64,000 nucleotides of DNA from Asterias rubens (taxonomy: Eukaryota), in assembly GCF_902459465.1 (NCBI RefSeq), contig NC_047074.1, positions 3,906,001 through 3,970,000 of the forward strand, written 5' to 3'. Numbering within the stretch: position 1 is the stretch's first letter; each line of letters opens with the position of its first letter. Both the position numbers and the translations under genes were made by a program. The notes under the pieces are model-generated. The model searched no databases and was not told where the DNA came from. It saw only the letters and a list, made by a program, of their open reading frames with translations. Below are positions 35,516-57,858 of this stretch, piece after piece.

Positions 35516-38500
35516 ATGGCGCTCAAAGGACCGCTGATTGTAGGATTGTGTGTGTTTCTCGGGTGCCTGTTTCTAGTCATGTTACCCTCGTTGATCGTCA
35601 CGGCACGACCGTACTCCAACTGGCGATTCAGGGAGGTGCAGTGCGAGTACAGCGCCCAGAATGAGGAGAATAATCGGCTGGATTGCTTCCCGGAGTTGAA
35701 GATGCCAACCGAGAGAGAGTGCCAGGCTAGGGGGTGCTGCTACGTCGATGTGACCGTCAACCGAGAGGCCGTGGTGCCGGAATGTTACTTGCCAAGGGGA
35801 GTGGGTTATGAGGTAAGACAATCTATGTGTTCCCACTTTGGTTTTTATTTAGTGATGGACTTAAAAGCAACTTATTTATCGTGTAGGACCGTTTGATTGT
35901 TATAGTCCTATATTAAAGGCAGTGTACACTATTGGTATTTACTCAAAATAATTATCATCATAAAACCTTTCTTAATTACAAGTAAGTAATGGGGAGAGGT
36001 TGATGGTATAAAACATTGAGAGAAACGGCTCCCTCTGAAGTGACGTAGGTTTCGAGAAAGAAGTCATTTTTCACGAATTTGATTTCGAGACCTCAAGTTT
36101 AGAACTTGAGGTCGCGCTTTTGACACGCGCTTTAACTTGCGTCTGTGTTCTGCGTGATGACCAGAGTGTGCAATTTCGTAGATCTGCTCGAGTTGCCAAT
36201 CAAAGGTCAAATTACGGGAGAATATCCAGGGAATACAACAACAACAAAAAATGTCAAAGAATTACTCAATTTTGTCCTACCTTTGAAGGATTTTCTGAAA
36301 TGGTTCAAGTTACGTATTTTGAAAATTAATAAAAGTACCAAACACGCACGTGCTGTATTAAGAGATAGACATTTCACCTCGAAGTGAGGTTTGTTATAAA
36401 TCTCCAATGAGCCGTGGTGGTTCCGGGGAAGAACTATACCACTGAATATATGTATAACATTATGCCTCTGCACACTTCTCTTGAAGGTATCTTCACAGTG
36501 CAAAATTTCAAATCCTATTGGGATTTCTGAGGGATCACTAACCACTGCAGACCCAAATAAGGCAAAGCATTTAAATATAACAAAGAGACTGAATAATCGC
36601 CTACTGATAGAGTATTCATGGAGTATAGTCAACTTTTATTAAACTCACAACTACTGAAGAGGAAAATACTAAATTCACATGTCTCCGTGAGTTTAATTCC
36701 GTCACTGATCAAGTTCTTAATCCTGTTGGTTTCTTAATGTAGTTGGTTTTACTAGTAGTTTGTGTAAATTTGTACATTGAAGAAACTTGAATAAATTCCC
36801 CCCTCCAGGAAAAAAAAAGTTCTTAATCCTTTATCCCATGAACAGGTGATGGGAGCCAAACAGGTCCTTACATCGGGGTACGAGTTGTATCTGCAGAGAA
36901 TCAACACTCCAAGGTTCTTTCACAGGGAGGCAGAGAACCTCGTGGTGCATGTAGACGAGCAGGCAGAGAATAGACTCCACGTCAAGGTGCTGTAATTTGT
37001 TCGTCTTGGAAGTTCAATGTATTATTGGGTATAAATCAATGTGTTAAAACACGTCACCTTTTCGCAAAATAGTTGAACACGGATGAGGTCAAGACTAGAT
37101 CCAAAAAGCTGGGATCGCTAACTTGTCAGTGTGTTTCTGTTGTTCCCATAGAAGTGCAATGTCACCGAACCGAGGCTTGAAGGAAACATAGTCTGGTCTC
37201 CCAATATGTACTGAGTATATAACTCTCATTGTCACTGTGTAAACAGGGAACCTGTCGACACATGATCTGATTCTCAACTGAGCTTATTCTTGCACTTTTT
37301 ATCTAGAAACTCAACCTAACATTTTTAACTTAGACTATTTTTACATAGCCTGGACTGTCAATTAGCTACCTAGAATATTGACCATTCCCCGAAATTTCCT
37401 GGCAGAAGTTTGATGTTGGAGATTCAGCCATTTCAGCACAAATTAATGTGTTGTGAACAAAATATTAATAAGTGCGTGATAAAATGAATTGTTATAAACG
37501 GTACTGTTAGAAAAACACGATGGCGTGAGCGTACACGTTTATTCTGATGCTGTCACTAAGTTTTATGTTGGTATCTATTACGGTTCCCAATTTATGCCAC
37601 ATGACATTTGCCGATAGAGCCTTCTCAGTCTATGGACCCAAAATCTAGAATAAACATCCAAATCAAATTAGGGACACAACATCCTTTAACACATTCAAGA
37701 AACTTCTGTTTGAAAGCCCACTTGTTTCAGGAGGCCTACCATCAATGACTTATTTATTTTTCATGTGAGCATTTAAGCAAACCTTTGATTTGGGTGCTTT
37801 ACAAATTGATTTATGATTGATTGAAAACCCCTGCTTGCTTTTACTTGCACAGATCTCCGAATACCACTACGTCAATTATCAAGACTGGAAGTTCCCCGTG
37901 AAGATGGACCGATTGTGGGAGCCTCGCTATGAAGTTCCAATCGAGGTCACAAGACCCGCAAGACAGTCTGCGTGGAAAGACTACATCTTCAACTACACTA
38001 CCAACCCGTTCACTATGCAGCTAACCAGGCGAATAAGTAACCGTTTTAACATGTAAGTAAACAATTATCGCGAGTACAGTTTATTCAAGTCCAAAGCAAG
38101 TTGAATACAATCCTTAAATACATTTTCGGTAACTCCCTTTTCAACTTATATTTAAACCACAAACCCGTTCACTATGCAGTTGTCCAGGTGAATAACTATA
38201 ACCGATTTAACATGTACGAGGAAAAGTATCGCAAGATCAGTTTGTTCAAGTCTTCATCAAGTTAAACACAATCGTTAAATGAATATCAAATTCCGTTTCA
38301 ACACAGGCTACAGCAACACACATATTATAGCTTTGCTTCTAAAATGAGAGCGGGAAAAGGAATTTTAAAGAGATTTTTTAATAGGCTATTATCTGAAGAG
38401 ATGATATTTTAGAGATTGTTGGAAGCGTCAGATGGCGTGTGGTTTTTCCCGAGAGGTTCAAGGTCGCACCAACTGCTCTTTTCAGAGCCTCGTCTGATTT

Positions 38501-56500: not shown

Positions 56501-57858
56501 TACATGATCTGTTTTTAAAGTTTTTTTTTCTCTTTAATTTCAGACACATATGAGCGAAATATTGACATATACATGGAGTTCTTCGCAGATCTTGTAAGTA
56601 ACTTTGCTAAGCAAAATTTAGCAGGATACAGCAACAATTGGTACACAATTTGATATTTCCACTGCTAACCTTCTGATAAGTACATGTACGACTGTTTTGT
56701 GCTGAGATACTTTTTGTGCTTAAACAGGTCTATCAAATTGGACCCTTGTCAGCTGACAGGCAGTTTTGTAAGTCATGGATACAGGATCAGGACATTTTCA
56801 GCTTTCTGACTAAGTTGATAGAAAACAAAGCTACTGATATGTAGGCTACATGTAAATCTCTAAGCCACATTCATAATGAATGCAAATATTGGCTCCTCAC
56901 TCTTCTTTATTATAGCTTCGGCCGATGCAGTGTATTAGGCCTATACTGCAAACTGGGGTGTTAAAATTGACATTTGTCACATATAGATACCAACAAAGAA
57001 AATCACATTTAACAATATAATGATTTTTGGGGTTGAACAAAGAATTGACTATTTTTTTGACTACTGAATATTTTTTTTGACTACTGAATATTTTACAACA
57101 CAGTTAAAATACACTTAGTTTTGCCATCACAATTACATTGGTGTTGTTTTAACACTAATTATAATATAATTTTGATTCTCTCTAGGGTATCTATGTAACA
57201 ACACCCACTGTGTAAATTTTAACACCCCAGTTTTTGCAGCCTTGAATACTATCAGCCACCCTGCTGTTTTTATCATACAAAAAATCCAGCATGATTATAT
57301 TATGGTTGTCTTTTTCTTCCTTTTTTTCAGCTAAAATTGGAGATGCTGTCACAGCGAATCGGTTTAATGGAGTACAATGACAAGATTATTCTGCCCAGGA
57401 TTCAGAAGGTCACATTTGTCGGTCTACAGAAGAACCCTGGTAACCAGCTATATGTGGACAACGTGCAGCTCGGCACTGAATTCTTTGATTATGATGTCAC
57501 AAATCGGGTAAGTTTTCATTTTTTTTTTTTTTTAATTGTGTATGCAAGTCGCCAGACACACAAGGCCTGAAGGCCACTTCAAGGTGTGGGCTACAATTAT
57601 TTTTTTTGCCATCTACTCCTAGGGCTGAACTTGAGTGTTGCAGTTGGGATGGGAGATTTTTTTTTCACAGAGCTCGGGAAGGCACTGAGTTGTACAGTGC
57701 TAACACACATCCGTGTATATGGGTAAAACCAAAATTGATATTTAGCTGCTAACAGTTTTGTGGGTTTTTTTAATTTGATGTTACAGGTATTGGAAATCCG
57801 TGGAATTGACATGGACATCACATCAGACCATCGGATAGATCTGCAGGCACCAAACTAG
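35516..57858 (+). CDS. Membrane-anchored GH31-family paralog lacking both catalytic Asp residues (probable pseudoenzyme), 23 exons, 952 aa
   Basis: Exons 35516-35812, 36846-36986, 37853-38052, 38803-38980, 39535-39634, 39948-40060, 40500-40625, 41053-41178, 42099-42218, 43194-43307, 44977-45064, 45889-46006, 47164-47300, 47891-47925, 48546-48668, 51469-51617, 52095-52182 (GC donor), 52632-52700, 54123-54265, 54805-54899, 56544-56593, 57331-57507, 57787-57858 (2859 nt, no internal stop). Fold motifs are kept ([68 protein letters not shown]), but WIDMNEP reads IMTENEP and HWLGDN reads HFLGRN. Confidence 0.93.
35534..35602 (+). other. Signal-anchor / type II transmembrane helix of GH31 gene 2
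   Basis: MALKGP followed by [24 protein letters not shown] cleavable signal peptide cannot be excluded by eye. Confidence 0.65.
35917..36113. mobile_element. Family-A MITE, half copy
   Basis: TTAA|aggcagtgtacactattgg... breaks off at the internal palindrome gagacctcaagtttagaacttgaggtc. Confidence 0.8.
41274..41541. mobile_element. Symmetric foldback derivative of family A (the same end twice)
   Basis: Both ~125-bp arms carry the ttactcaaaataatt...gagtaatggggag...gagaaacggctccctctgaagt end in inverted orientation; TTAA on both flanks. Confidence 0.88.
41659..42036. mobile_element. Family-A MITE
   Basis: TTAA|aggcagtggacactattgacaatt...caagtaccaatagtgtccaatgta. Confidence 0.88.
42905..43125 (+). 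mobile_element. tRNA-headed interspersed repeat (SINE-like family J)
   Basis: Head CTCGG-TAGTCTAGTTGGTAAAAC-...-GTGGGTTCGAATCCCAC-CCGAG with A and B boxes, body gaaagtactgagtatacagtgctaacacacatcggtgta. Other copies at ~1215-1300, 12984-13115(-), 21950-22070, 29230-29480, 32000-32165(-) and 57655-57745. Confidence 0.78.
43403..43942. mobile_element. Family-A MITE with family-E element (43777-43933) nested in its terminal repeat
   Basis: TTAA|agacagtggacactattgg...ggtgtcCTG[E]CAGtgtcttt. Confidence 0.88.
44977..45064 (+). CDS. GH31 gene 2 exon 11: nucleophile position is Thr (ACC 44977-44979), next residue Glu
   Basis: Exon 10 ends ...PFDGIIM|gtgagt and exon 11 starts ttatag|TENEPANF. The intron position and phase are the same as in gene 1. 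Confidence 0.9.
46201..46570. mobile_element. TTAA MITE with ~90-bp imperfect TIRs (family C), nested in an older TIR element (~46028-46652)
   Basis: agggtctggttactttt...cacagatttacattaaacttac mirrored by gtaagtttaatgtaaatcgatggac...aaaaagtacccaaatcct|TTAA. The outer TIR is gcgagcaaaaacgtgaacgtga / tcacgttcacgtatttgctcgc. Confidence 0.8.
47164..47300 (+). CDS. GH31 gene 2 exon 13: acid/base position is Arg (AGG 47258-47260)
   Basis: Translates ...[23 protein letters not shown]. The exon is 137 nt, the same length as the gene 1 equivalent. Confidence 0.92.
49676..50130. repeat. Three degenerate tandem units of ~180-190 bp in gene 2 intron 15
   Basis: Recurring cacacaatcca..gatcttctttcttc.cccagtggg and ttctgacaacagtca.caaaaagagctcagttctga blocks. 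Confidence 0.75.
50971..51333. mobile_element. Family-A MITE
   Basis: aggcagtggacactattggtaatc...aattaccaatagtgtccagtgtct|TTAA. Confidence 0.88.
53415..53570. mobile_element. CATAGACCTTTTCGCAAATAC-TIR MITE
   Basis: ~21-bp TIR; near-identical inverted copy at 31014-31170. Confidence 0.85.
53716..54056. mobile_element. Family-A MITE, right end degenerate
   Basis: TTAA|agacactggacactattggtaattgtcaaagacc... Confidence 0.82.
55082..55545. other. Assembly gap (464 N) inside gene 2 intron 20
   Basis: Run of N. The flanking exons 54805-54899 and 56544-56593 join in frame (L-N-T-Y), so no exon is required inside the gap. Confidence 0.98.
55546..56400. repeat. Compound (GTT)n/(GCT)n minisatellite, 134-149 bp units
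   Basis: The anchor ggggatga(t/c)tat recurs at 55562, 55698, 55841, 55975, 56115 and 56264. Confidence 0.95.
56945..57240. mobile_element. MITE with actgcaaa(aa)ctggggtgttaaaatt TIRs
   Basis: actgcaaactggggtgttaaaattgaca...tgtaaattttaacaccccagtttttgcag. Confidence 0.7.

Follow-up and report, generated by a model that had tools for sequence, protein, structure and literature searches.

Non-catalytic proteins with a glycosidase fold are known from the glycoside hydrolase (GH) families GH13 (SLC3A1/2), GH1 (Klotho), GH18 (chi-lectins) and GH22 (alpha-lactalbumin). SLC3A1 (rBAT) and SLC3A2 (4F2hc/CD98hc), the heavy chains of amino-acid transporters, are type II membrane proteins whose GH13-like ectodomain is inactive. 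Alpha- and beta-Klotho carry tandem GH1 pseudoglycosidase domains and are FGF co-receptors, and GH18 chi-lectins such as YKL-40 have the catalytic acid replaced and are kept as binding proteins. Here we describe a GH31 gene of the starfish Asterias rubens, termed gene B, which lies in a window of 64,000 nucleotides (NC_047074.1, positions 3,906,001 to 3,970,000, forward strand) downstream of an active-type GH31 gene, termed gene A. The evidence supports a GH31 pseudoenzyme that is old, present across the echinoderm clade, maintained by selection and annotated as an enzyme. Gene B is the A. rubens member of an echinoderm-wide single-unit GH31 family, and we put the probability that it is maintained as a non-catalytic protein at about 85%. 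An initial annotation, made from the letters of the window, had proposed that the gene is intact, kept by selection and encodes a membrane-anchored GH31 protein without catalytic function, and this core reading is supported by the comparative data and the AlphaFold2 (AF2) fold.

The closest structures are those of ntSI and ntMGAM (3LPP/3LPO, 2QLY), the N-terminal units of human sucrase-isomaltase (SI) and maltase-glucoamylase (MGAM), and of lysosomal GAA (5NN3). Like gene B, these consist of a trefoil, an N-terminal beta-sandwich, a (beta/alpha)8 barrel and proximal and distal C-terminal domains, and SI and MGAM also have the N-terminal membrane anchor that is predicted for gene B. In contrast, gene B has Thr and Arg in place of the catalytic Asp residues, and D203, Y299/W376, D327, D366, W441, W539, F575 and H600 are replaced. 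Vertebrate SI and MGAM are two-unit proteins, whereas gene B encodes a single unit and has no Ser/Thr-rich stalk between helix and trefoil.

The pseudoenzymes introduced above are comparable in kind, although gene B falls into none of their families. SLC3A1 and SLC3A2 combine a type II anchor, which gene B may also have, with a large non-catalytic glycosidase-fold ectodomain that is kept by selection, but the fold families differ (GH13 versus GH31). Klotho is likewise a membrane-anchored glycosidase fold that has lost a catalytic carboxylate and is re-used for protein and ligand binding. Unlike gene B, however, it belongs to GH1, is type I rather than predicted type II, and is a vertebrate protein with a known ligand. 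The chi-lectins share the replaced catalytic acid. They differ in being secreted proteins of another fold family that keep the ancestral sugar groove, whereas the -1 subsite of gene B is mostly lost and varies between echinoderm classes.

Catalytic residues, predicted fold and predicted membrane anchor

The nucleophile position of gene B lies at an exon junction. Exon 10 ends with GGAATTATAATG before the donor gtgagt and exon 11 opens with ACCGAGAATGAA after the acceptor ttatag, so that the junction reads DGIIM/TENEP. The same phase-0 junction in gene A (TGGATT before gtaagc, GACATGAACGAG after tctaag) reads WI/DMNEP. In phmmer comparisons with PDB chains, the Asn at residue 3 of exon 11 aligns with GAA N520 and ntMGAM N445, and therefore the Thr of gene B falls on the nucleophile, GAA D518/ntMGAM D443. 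The exon with HFLGRN aligns with ntMGAM 520-554, and its Arg falls on the acid/base residue D542. Hence, both replacements read in the initial annotation, Asp to Thr at ACC 44977 and Asp to Arg at AGG 47258, were confirmed. Its remark that these are multi-nucleotide changes also holds, as ACC differs from the Asp codons at two or more nucleotides and AGG at three.

Further changes claimed for the pocket were borne out by ntMGAM numbering and by comparison with 31 active homologues. When residues 240-450 were aligned to ntMGAM, gene B had A/P at R202/D203, E at Y299 (GAA W376), G at D327 and T at D366. The active homologues additionally revealed I at W441, E at M444, F at W539, T at F575 and F at H600. 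In this alignment R526, D571 and the RNHN Arg are unchanged. Among the -1 subsite residues D203, D327, W441, W539, H600, R526 and D571, only R526 and D571 are retained in Asterias. Judged by its sequence, gene B lacks the defining features of a GH31 retaining alpha-glucosidase, namely the nucleophile, the acid/base and most residues of the -1 subsite. The protein would be unable to run the retaining double-displacement reaction and would thus act by binding, not hydrolysis.

Catalysis might still proceed through other residues or another chemistry, for example through the Glu that follows the Thr in starfish (TENE). This Glu occupies the ntMGAM M444 position, adjoining the lost nucleophile, and Arg residues of the pocket are retained. 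Outside starfish, however, this position holds Tyr, Met or Asp. The acid/base site carries a basic residue or Asn, and W441, D327, D366, H600 and D203 have been lost as well. To our knowledge, and from what is established on retaining GH31 mechanisms, no glycosidase with such a set of losses stays active, and we regard a still active enzyme as very improbable.

By homology and predicted fold, the gene B protein is a GH31 protein of the SI/MGAM/GAA subgroup. Its Asterias amurensis orthologue (P0167) has precomputed Pfam matches to the GH31 models PF01055, PF13802 and PF21365 and to the trefoil model PF00088. phmmer searches against PDB gave E values of 0 to 1e-154 for MGAM, SI and GAA chains at 33-35% sequence identity. 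AF2 was run on P0167, which is 98.7% identical to the gene B protein, with an alignment of 40 sequences. The resulting model has a mean predicted local distance difference test score (pLDDT) of 87.9, a predicted template modelling score (pTM) of 0.89 and a helix at residues 4-29. The superposition proposed in the initial annotation was carried out with Foldseek, which yielded a target-normalised TM-score of 0.96 and a root mean square deviation of 2.1-2.2 A to ntSI (3LPP), ntMGAM (2QLY) and GAA (5NN3).

A short basic N-terminus followed by a hydrophobic stretch of about 25 residues is found in all orthologues, from which we infer a predicted type II (signal-anchor) membrane glycoprotein. Active-type (A-type) proteins have a stalk and a 4-Cys trefoil. 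The gene B protein has a full 6-Cys trefoil with no stalk between helix and trefoil, which would place the ectodomain close to the membrane, and the membrane-proximal motif LPS.IVT..PY.NW.F is conserved across classes.

Orthologues, age and selection

An exon-4 query against 1.84 billion cluster representatives retrieved a protein with neither catalytic motif from the sea urchin Lytechinus pictus (P0010), which was then used as query. Orthologues were found in four echinoderm classes. Besides P0167, these are proteins of the asteroids Acanthaster planci (P0171; 76% identity to gene B) and Patiria miniata (P0168; 75%), the ophiuroid Amphiura (P0152/P0270; 50% for a Logan contig whose 90% cluster includes Amphiura filiformis), the echinoids Diadema setosum (P0151; 46%) and L. 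pictus (45%), and the holothuroid Holothuria leucospilota (P0161; 42%). All are intact, comprise 944-958 amino acids (aa) and start with Met, a few polar residues and about 25 hydrophobic ones. At the loci of Acanthaster and Patiria the gene has 23 exons of near-equal sizes, and the extracted coding sequences translate exactly to the respective proteins. The initial annotation had suggested checking whether Thr and Arg are fixed at the catalytic positions. Thr is found in all eight members of the clade, whereas Arg is not fixed: the acid/base position reads R, R, K, N, N, N, K, K and is Asp in none.

In a tree of 38 sequences (LG+C20), the eight members are monophyletic with a support of 99 in the Shimodaira-Hasegawa-like approximate likelihood ratio test (SH-aLRT). 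Their branching, (Holothuria,(Diadema,Lytechinus)) and (Amphiura,(Asterias,(Acanthaster,Patiria))), equals the accepted phylogeny of the classes. The sister group is the clade of A-type enzymes that includes gene A (SH-aLRT 93). The sequences and the tree show that the family arose by a duplication shared with the active A-type enzymes, that both catalytic Asp residues were lost before starfish and brittle stars split from sea urchins and sea cucumbers, and that the gene has been vertically inherited and kept intact since. This split dates to roughly 480 million years ago or older according to established echinoderm phylogeny.

The C-terminal half (residues ~884-1611) of a model from the crinoid Antedon mediterranea (P0007) is sister to the catalytically dead clade. 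In this B-like unit the nucleophile Asp and RNHN are still present, the acid/base residue is His, and R202, D327, D366 and W441 were lost. Because the nucleophile Asp is present and the acid/base Asp is not, this suggests a stepwise loss of catalysis in which the acid/base Asp was lost before the nucleophile Asp, the crinoid representing an intermediate stage. The crinoid evidence consists of one partial gene model, fused to an A-type unit, and a protein search found no second crinoid orthologue. Four other candidates for further dead clades (P0051, P0097, P0110 and P0150) were rejected as partial gene models missing the motifs. A single-unit protein of 994 aa from the bat Rousettus aegyptiacus (P0200, 'maltase-glucoamylase, intestinal') reads WINMNEP, with Asn at the nucleophile position, and keeps HWLGDN. 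It may be an independent mammalian loss of catalysis or a model error.

Purifying selection on the gene B family is shown by the coding sequences. Between Acanthaster and Patiria, the only pair that gave a usable ratio, the nonsynonymous rate (dN) is 0.10-0.11 and the synonymous rate (dS) 1.1-1.3, resulting in a dN/dS (omega) of 0.08-0.10, far below 1, a point that the initial annotation had proposed to check. dN is 0.16-0.17 for Asterias against Acanthaster or Patiria and 0.10 for two ophiuroids, which are 86% identical in amino acids versus 75% in nucleotides. In these pairs, as between classes, dS is saturated (undefined with NG86, no estimate with YN00). The nucleophile Thr is encoded by ACC, ACT, ACG and ACT in four species, and this synonymous turnover indicates that the amino acid is held, not the codon. 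Between A. rubens and A. amurensis, compared by amino-acid differences and set against gene A, gene B differs at 12 of 952 residues, none of them in the pocket, and the active gene A at 23 of 921.

Transcript-like contigs are available for orthologues, and the RefSeq isoforms imply transcript support. Logan contigs of 2,962 nt (ERR6349744) and 3,391 nt (SRR29838370, one of six of this size carrying the protein) encode exactly the ophiuroid and Holothuria proteins, respectively, as uninterrupted open reading frames. As the corresponding genes have at least 20 introns, these intron-less contigs appear to be transcripts. The catalytic residue losses, and nothing further, could point to a recent unprocessed pseudogene or to a gene-model artefact with an open frame by chance. 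This explanation is refuted by the comparative data and retains next to no probability: intact orthologues with the same Thr exist in four classes, omega is about 0.09, the 23-exon structure is conserved, orthologues have transcript contigs, and the catalytic codons are two and three nucleotide changes from Asp. The earlier view that the gene is maintained and not decaying agrees with these data, with the turnover of the Thr codon and with the confident GH31 fold.

Gene structure, active neighbour and the fused database model

Comparison of stop-free stretches between the two halves of the window gave two collinear sets of GH31-like exons on the plus strand. The set at about 15-31 kb carries intact HWLGDN, DICGF and GDIDY, and the set at 35.5-55 kb the altered HFLGRN, DICGT and SGMDY. 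Gene models were built with a custom spliced protein-to-genome aligner that allows only GT-AG introns, in all phases, and gene B was aligned to P0010, P0167 and P0268 (Table 1). A model guided by the distant Lytechinus protein P0010 (23 exons in one frame, 943 aa) was dropped in favour of one guided by P0167 ('sucrase-isomaltase, intestinal-like isoform X1'), which corrected three junctions and exposed a GC-AG option. This final alignment has 23 exons and 952 aa with 14 mismatches, two of which vanish if intron 17 is read as GC-AG. The coding sequence of 2,856 nt plus stop contains no internal stop and no frameshift. Thus, the spliced alignment reproduced the frame, exon number, length and end coordinates given in the initial annotation.

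All introns of gene B except intron 17 are GT-AG, and donor and acceptor contexts are good throughout. Intron 17 has two in-frame readings, GC-AG (52182/52632) or GT-AG (52186/52636), which differ by two amino acids and yield Gly-Ala or Ala-Thr at residues 752-753. Since isoforms X1 and X2 of A. amurensis differ at exactly these residues, both junctions appear to be used. Exon 5 has tandem acceptors 6 nt apart that add or remove two residues; 39535 is chosen in the A. amurensis models and 39541 in the A. rubens RefSeq model. The GC content of the window is about 38% and its single N run costs gene B no coding sequence. Across the intron bearing the gap, the reading frame continues from exon 20 (95 nt, leaving phase 1) into exon 21 (50 nt). 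A 95-nt exon is directly followed by a 50-nt exon in Acanthaster and Patiria, and the protein is collinear across this junction with P0167, P0268 and the genes of both species, with no residues missing. At least two families of interspersed repeats (translated similarity 60-95%) are dispersed over introns of gene A and gene B and over the region preceding gene A.

Table 1. Coordinates of genes, exons, assembly gap and repeats in the window
Feature	Position	Strand	Remarks
Gene A	14689..32521	+	active-type GH31 neighbour; 23 exons, 921 aa, own Met and anchor, WIDMNE, HWLGDN
Gene A, exons 1-2	14689-15620	+	Pro/Thr-rich stalk, trefoil with only 4 Cys
Gene B	35516..57858	+	dead GH31 gene; ATG 35516 to TAG 57856-58; 23 coding exons, 952 aa
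Exon 1	35516..35812	+	Met, N-terminal hydrophobic helix (residues ~4-29), no stalk, trefoil (P-type) domain with 6 Cys
Exon 2	36846..36986	+	spliced alignment
Exon 3	37853..38052	+	spliced alignment
Exon 4	38803..38980	+	FSAP where active enzymes have FSRD (ntMGAM R202/D203)
Exon 5	39535..39634	+	alternative acceptor 39541, minus 2 aa
Exon 6	39948..40060	+	spliced alignment
Exon 7	40500..40625	+	GME where active enzymes have SRW/SRY (ntMGAM Y299)
Exon 8	41053..41178	+	SGMDY where active enzymes have GDIDY (ntMGAM D327)
Exon 9	42099..42218	+	LTPA where active enzymes have LDH/LDP (ntMGAM D366)
Exon 10	43194..43307	+	ends DGIIM (W441 to Ile), phase-0 donor
Exon 11	44977..45064	+	first codon ACC (44977-79), Thr at nucleophile position
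Exon 12	45889..46006	+	spliced alignment
Exon 13	47164..47300	+	HFLGRN (47246-63); AGG 47258-60, Arg at acid/base position
Exon 14	47891..47925	+	35 nt, size identical to gene A counterpart
Exon 15	48546..48668	+	DICGT and RIFR where active enzymes have DICGF and RNHN
Exon 16	51469..51617	+	spliced alignment
Exon 17	52095..52182	+	GC donor; alternative GT donor puts end at 52186
Exon 18	52632..52700	+	alternative acceptor puts start at 52636
Exon 19	54123..54265	+	spliced alignment
Exon 20	54805..54899	+	LFWDDGE; last exon 5' of gap-bearing intron
Assembly gap (N run)	55082..55545		inside intron 20 (54900-56543); no coding sequence affected
Exon 21	56544..56593	+	spliced alignment
Exon 22	57331..57507	+	spliced alignment
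Exon 23	57787..57858	+	includes TAG stop
Repeats, one set	5605-6265, 18880-19216, 41296-42021, 43396-43763, 50971-51295		translated similarity
Repeats, other set	15947-16251, 22050-22392, 26352-26708, 33635-33977, 41402-41516, 53694-54030		translated similarity

Gene A, modelled with its A. amurensis orthologue P0269 as guide, belongs with P0269, P0183, P0187 and P0218 to the A-type sister clade. It keeps all catalytic and subsite residues and is 35% identical to gene B. Its last exon runs to its own TAA at 32519-21, which is overlapped by AATAAA (TAA and AATAAA at 32517-32522). The genes lie in tandem on the same strand, 3 kb apart. The match in exon structure pointed out in the initial annotation was confirmed: each gene has 23 coding exons, of which the final 19 have a single counterpart in the other gene, six are equal in size (100, 113, 126, 137, 35 and 149 nt), and the phase-0 junction at the nucleophile is common to both.

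The A. rubens RefSeq protein XP_033637849.1 (P0268; 1,763 aa) matches both genes residue for residue except for junction choices and merges gene B with a gene A that lacks exons 1 and 2. Together with the Antedon model, which likewise joins an A-type to a B-like unit, and with the two-unit architecture of vertebrate SI and MGAM, it could indicate that gene B is the inactive C-terminal unit of a two-unit A-B polypeptide that works in cis with the active unit. In the window, however, the fused protein was reproducible only with a GT..TG or worse junction at 32508/35467 that bypasses the TAA and AATAAA of gene A. In the RefSeq data of A. amurensis, B is represented by two separate 952-aa isoforms and A by a separate protein of 921 aa. 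All other orthologues are single-unit proteins that start with Met and a hydrophobic helix. We conclude from these gene models that gene B is separate from gene A, since gene A is complete with its own TAA/AATAAA, the fusion needs a non-canonical junction and the genes are kept apart in A. amurensis. The fusion in XP_033637849.1 is probably a gene-model artefact, and a two-unit polypeptide appears improbable.

The genomic surroundings of the orthologues also argue against a two-unit gene. In Acanthaster, Patiria, Lytechinus, Amphiura and Holothuria, the 10 kb preceding the orthologue contain no GH31 gene. These upstream regions contain SH3-domain and unannotated genes in Acanthaster and Patiria and a GT10 fucosyltransferase gene in Lytechinus, and no gene was called there in Amphiura and Holothuria. 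In Lytechinus, the dead gene and two A-type genes are located on one chromosome, 1.8 and 4.2 Mb apart. Hence, a conserved A-B adjacency is unsupported within the 10-kb flanks and refuted in Lytechinus. A functional interaction between A and B is possible. In a comparison for flank synteny, the window had only a repeat in common with the Acanthaster and Patiria loci.

In Acanthaster (L001 22424-29466) and Amphiura (L005 41639-48316), the dead orthologue is closely followed, on its own strand, by a gene with collagen repeats and a TNF/C1q-like domain. This microsynteny in a starfish and a brittle star supports orthology. The 6 kb that follow gene B in the window showed no such gene.

Constraint and possible roles

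Conservation was assessed in 169 reference columns that are conserved at >=93% in 31 active sequences. The eight members of the dead clade all keep 87 of these, all have replaced 15 and some have replaced the remaining 67. Replaced throughout the clade are, among others, R202, I328, I364, D366, W441, D443, D542 and the NHN of RNHN. For comparison of domains, one starfish, one urchin and one sea cucumber were sampled in a matched way from A-type enzymes and dead clade, and three-way invariance was scored. It fell from 0.48-0.54 in A-type enzymes to 0.28-0.34 in the dead clade for the barrel and from 0.51 to 0.33 for the N-terminal sandwich, did not drop for the trefoil (0.30 versus 0.38) and dropped slightly for the C-terminal domains (0.42 and 0.35 versus 0.38 and 0.30). 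Residues that are invariant in the clade and specific to it are concentrated at 731-739, 861-894 and 939-944, as well as around the trefoil and the juxtamembrane segment. The barrel thus seems to be released from enzymatic constraint, and the scaffold and peripheral domains appear to be constrained still. A binding, scaffold or partner role fits this pattern better than one conserved sugar site.

Across 19 pocket sites, identity between classes is 0.39, compared with 0.49 for the whole protein and 0.97 for active enzymes. Among starfish alone, pocket identity (0.93) exceeds that of the whole protein (0.81). The initial annotation had considered the pocket to be rebuilt. This stands within starfish, but there is no single conserved new pocket between classes. 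Positions that contact sugar in active enzymes vary by class: 265 is P/D/N, 391 G/D, 393 D/N/E, 507 E/Y/M/D, 603 F/W/A, 606 R/K/N, 635 D/N and 639 T/F/Y.

Several points weigh against a non-catalytic membrane protein acting outside its old active site, in addition to the fused RefSeq model. The lower between-class conservation of the pocket is not significant (p about 0.13). Some replacements are fixed within the clade (T506 8/8, F765 8/8, K/R667 8/8, Y666 7/8, A264 7/8), and conservation of replaced pocket positions means that the pocket may still matter. A fragment search across the catalytic exons with P0167:470-700 found no A. rubens transcript. Finally, the topology is derived from hydrophobicity and the AF2 helix only, and a cleaved signal peptide is possible.

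The fixed replacements would be expected if the remodelled pocket were functional and the protein were a membrane lectin or sensor that binds a glycan or small ligand uncleaved, with a ligand specific for each class. All eight members retain R590 and R664, the equivalents of ntMGAM R526 and the RNHN Arg, the high conservation of the starfish pocket is in line with this idea, and the pocket has lost 3-5 acidic residues and gained 1-2 basic ones. On the other hand, most sugar-contact positions differ between classes, so that no common ligand is implied, and the barrel lost the most constraint of all regions. A lineage-tuned glycan-binding pocket is therefore our second choice and seems rather unlikely.

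A cell-surface scaffold, partner or co-receptor subunit is our first, though tentative, choice for the mechanism, because barrel and pocket lost conservation while the trefoil, the juxtamembrane region and the C-terminal domains show roughly the level of conservation seen in the active paralogue. The predicted ectodomain, a trefoil plus the five-domain GH31 fold, would be held near the membrane and would use surfaces outside the old -1 subsite. It may be located in the digestive epithelium, which is a guess. Taken jointly, a maintained non-catalytic GH31 protein with such a scaffold or partner mechanism is considered a probable explanation, a judgement in which the well-supported maintained non-catalytic protein counts for more than the mechanism.

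The roles suggested in the initial annotation, as a lectin, sensor, chaperone or partner subunit, are hypothetical, and its comparison with SLC3A1/2 is an analogy. In this vein, the dead GH31 ectodomain might act as the obligate accessory subunit or the co-receptor of a further membrane protein, although we regard this more specific idea as unlikely. The partner might be a receptor, a transporter for nutrients or the active A-type alpha-glucosidase that gave rise to the dead protein, and the interface might comprise the LPS.IVT..PY.NW.F motif, the trefoil and the C-terminal domains. The Cys that forms the disulfide with the light chain in SLC3 proteins has no free juxtamembrane counterpart in gene B. 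All Cys residues between helix and barrel belong to the 6-Cys trefoil pattern, including C43, the first after the helix and the first of the trefoil. If this were true, echinoderms would possess a counterpart of SLC3A2 or Klotho that is specific to them and built on a GH31 fold.

Full-text literature searches yielded no GH31 pseudoenzyme or inactive GH31 protein, nothing on this echinoderm clade or XP_033637849.1 and no account of an echinoderm sucrase-isomaltase or maltase-glucoamylase as a non-enzyme. Gene B is named "sucrase-isomaltase-like" in RefSeq. Pipelines name such genes sucrase-isomaltase or maltase-glucoamylase, and comparative studies consequently count them as digestive carbohydrases. 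In the one echinoderm paper found to deal with these genes, gene-family counts treat them as digestive enzymes on the basis of SwissProt-derived names (PMC11470021). The clade described here offers a clean case: its orthologues go back about half a billion years and share a fixed Thr at the nucleophile position, and the active sister paralogue provides a built-in control. As Lytechinus pictus and Patiria miniata are tractable by knock-down, knock-out and in situ hybridization, the function of this family is directly testable.

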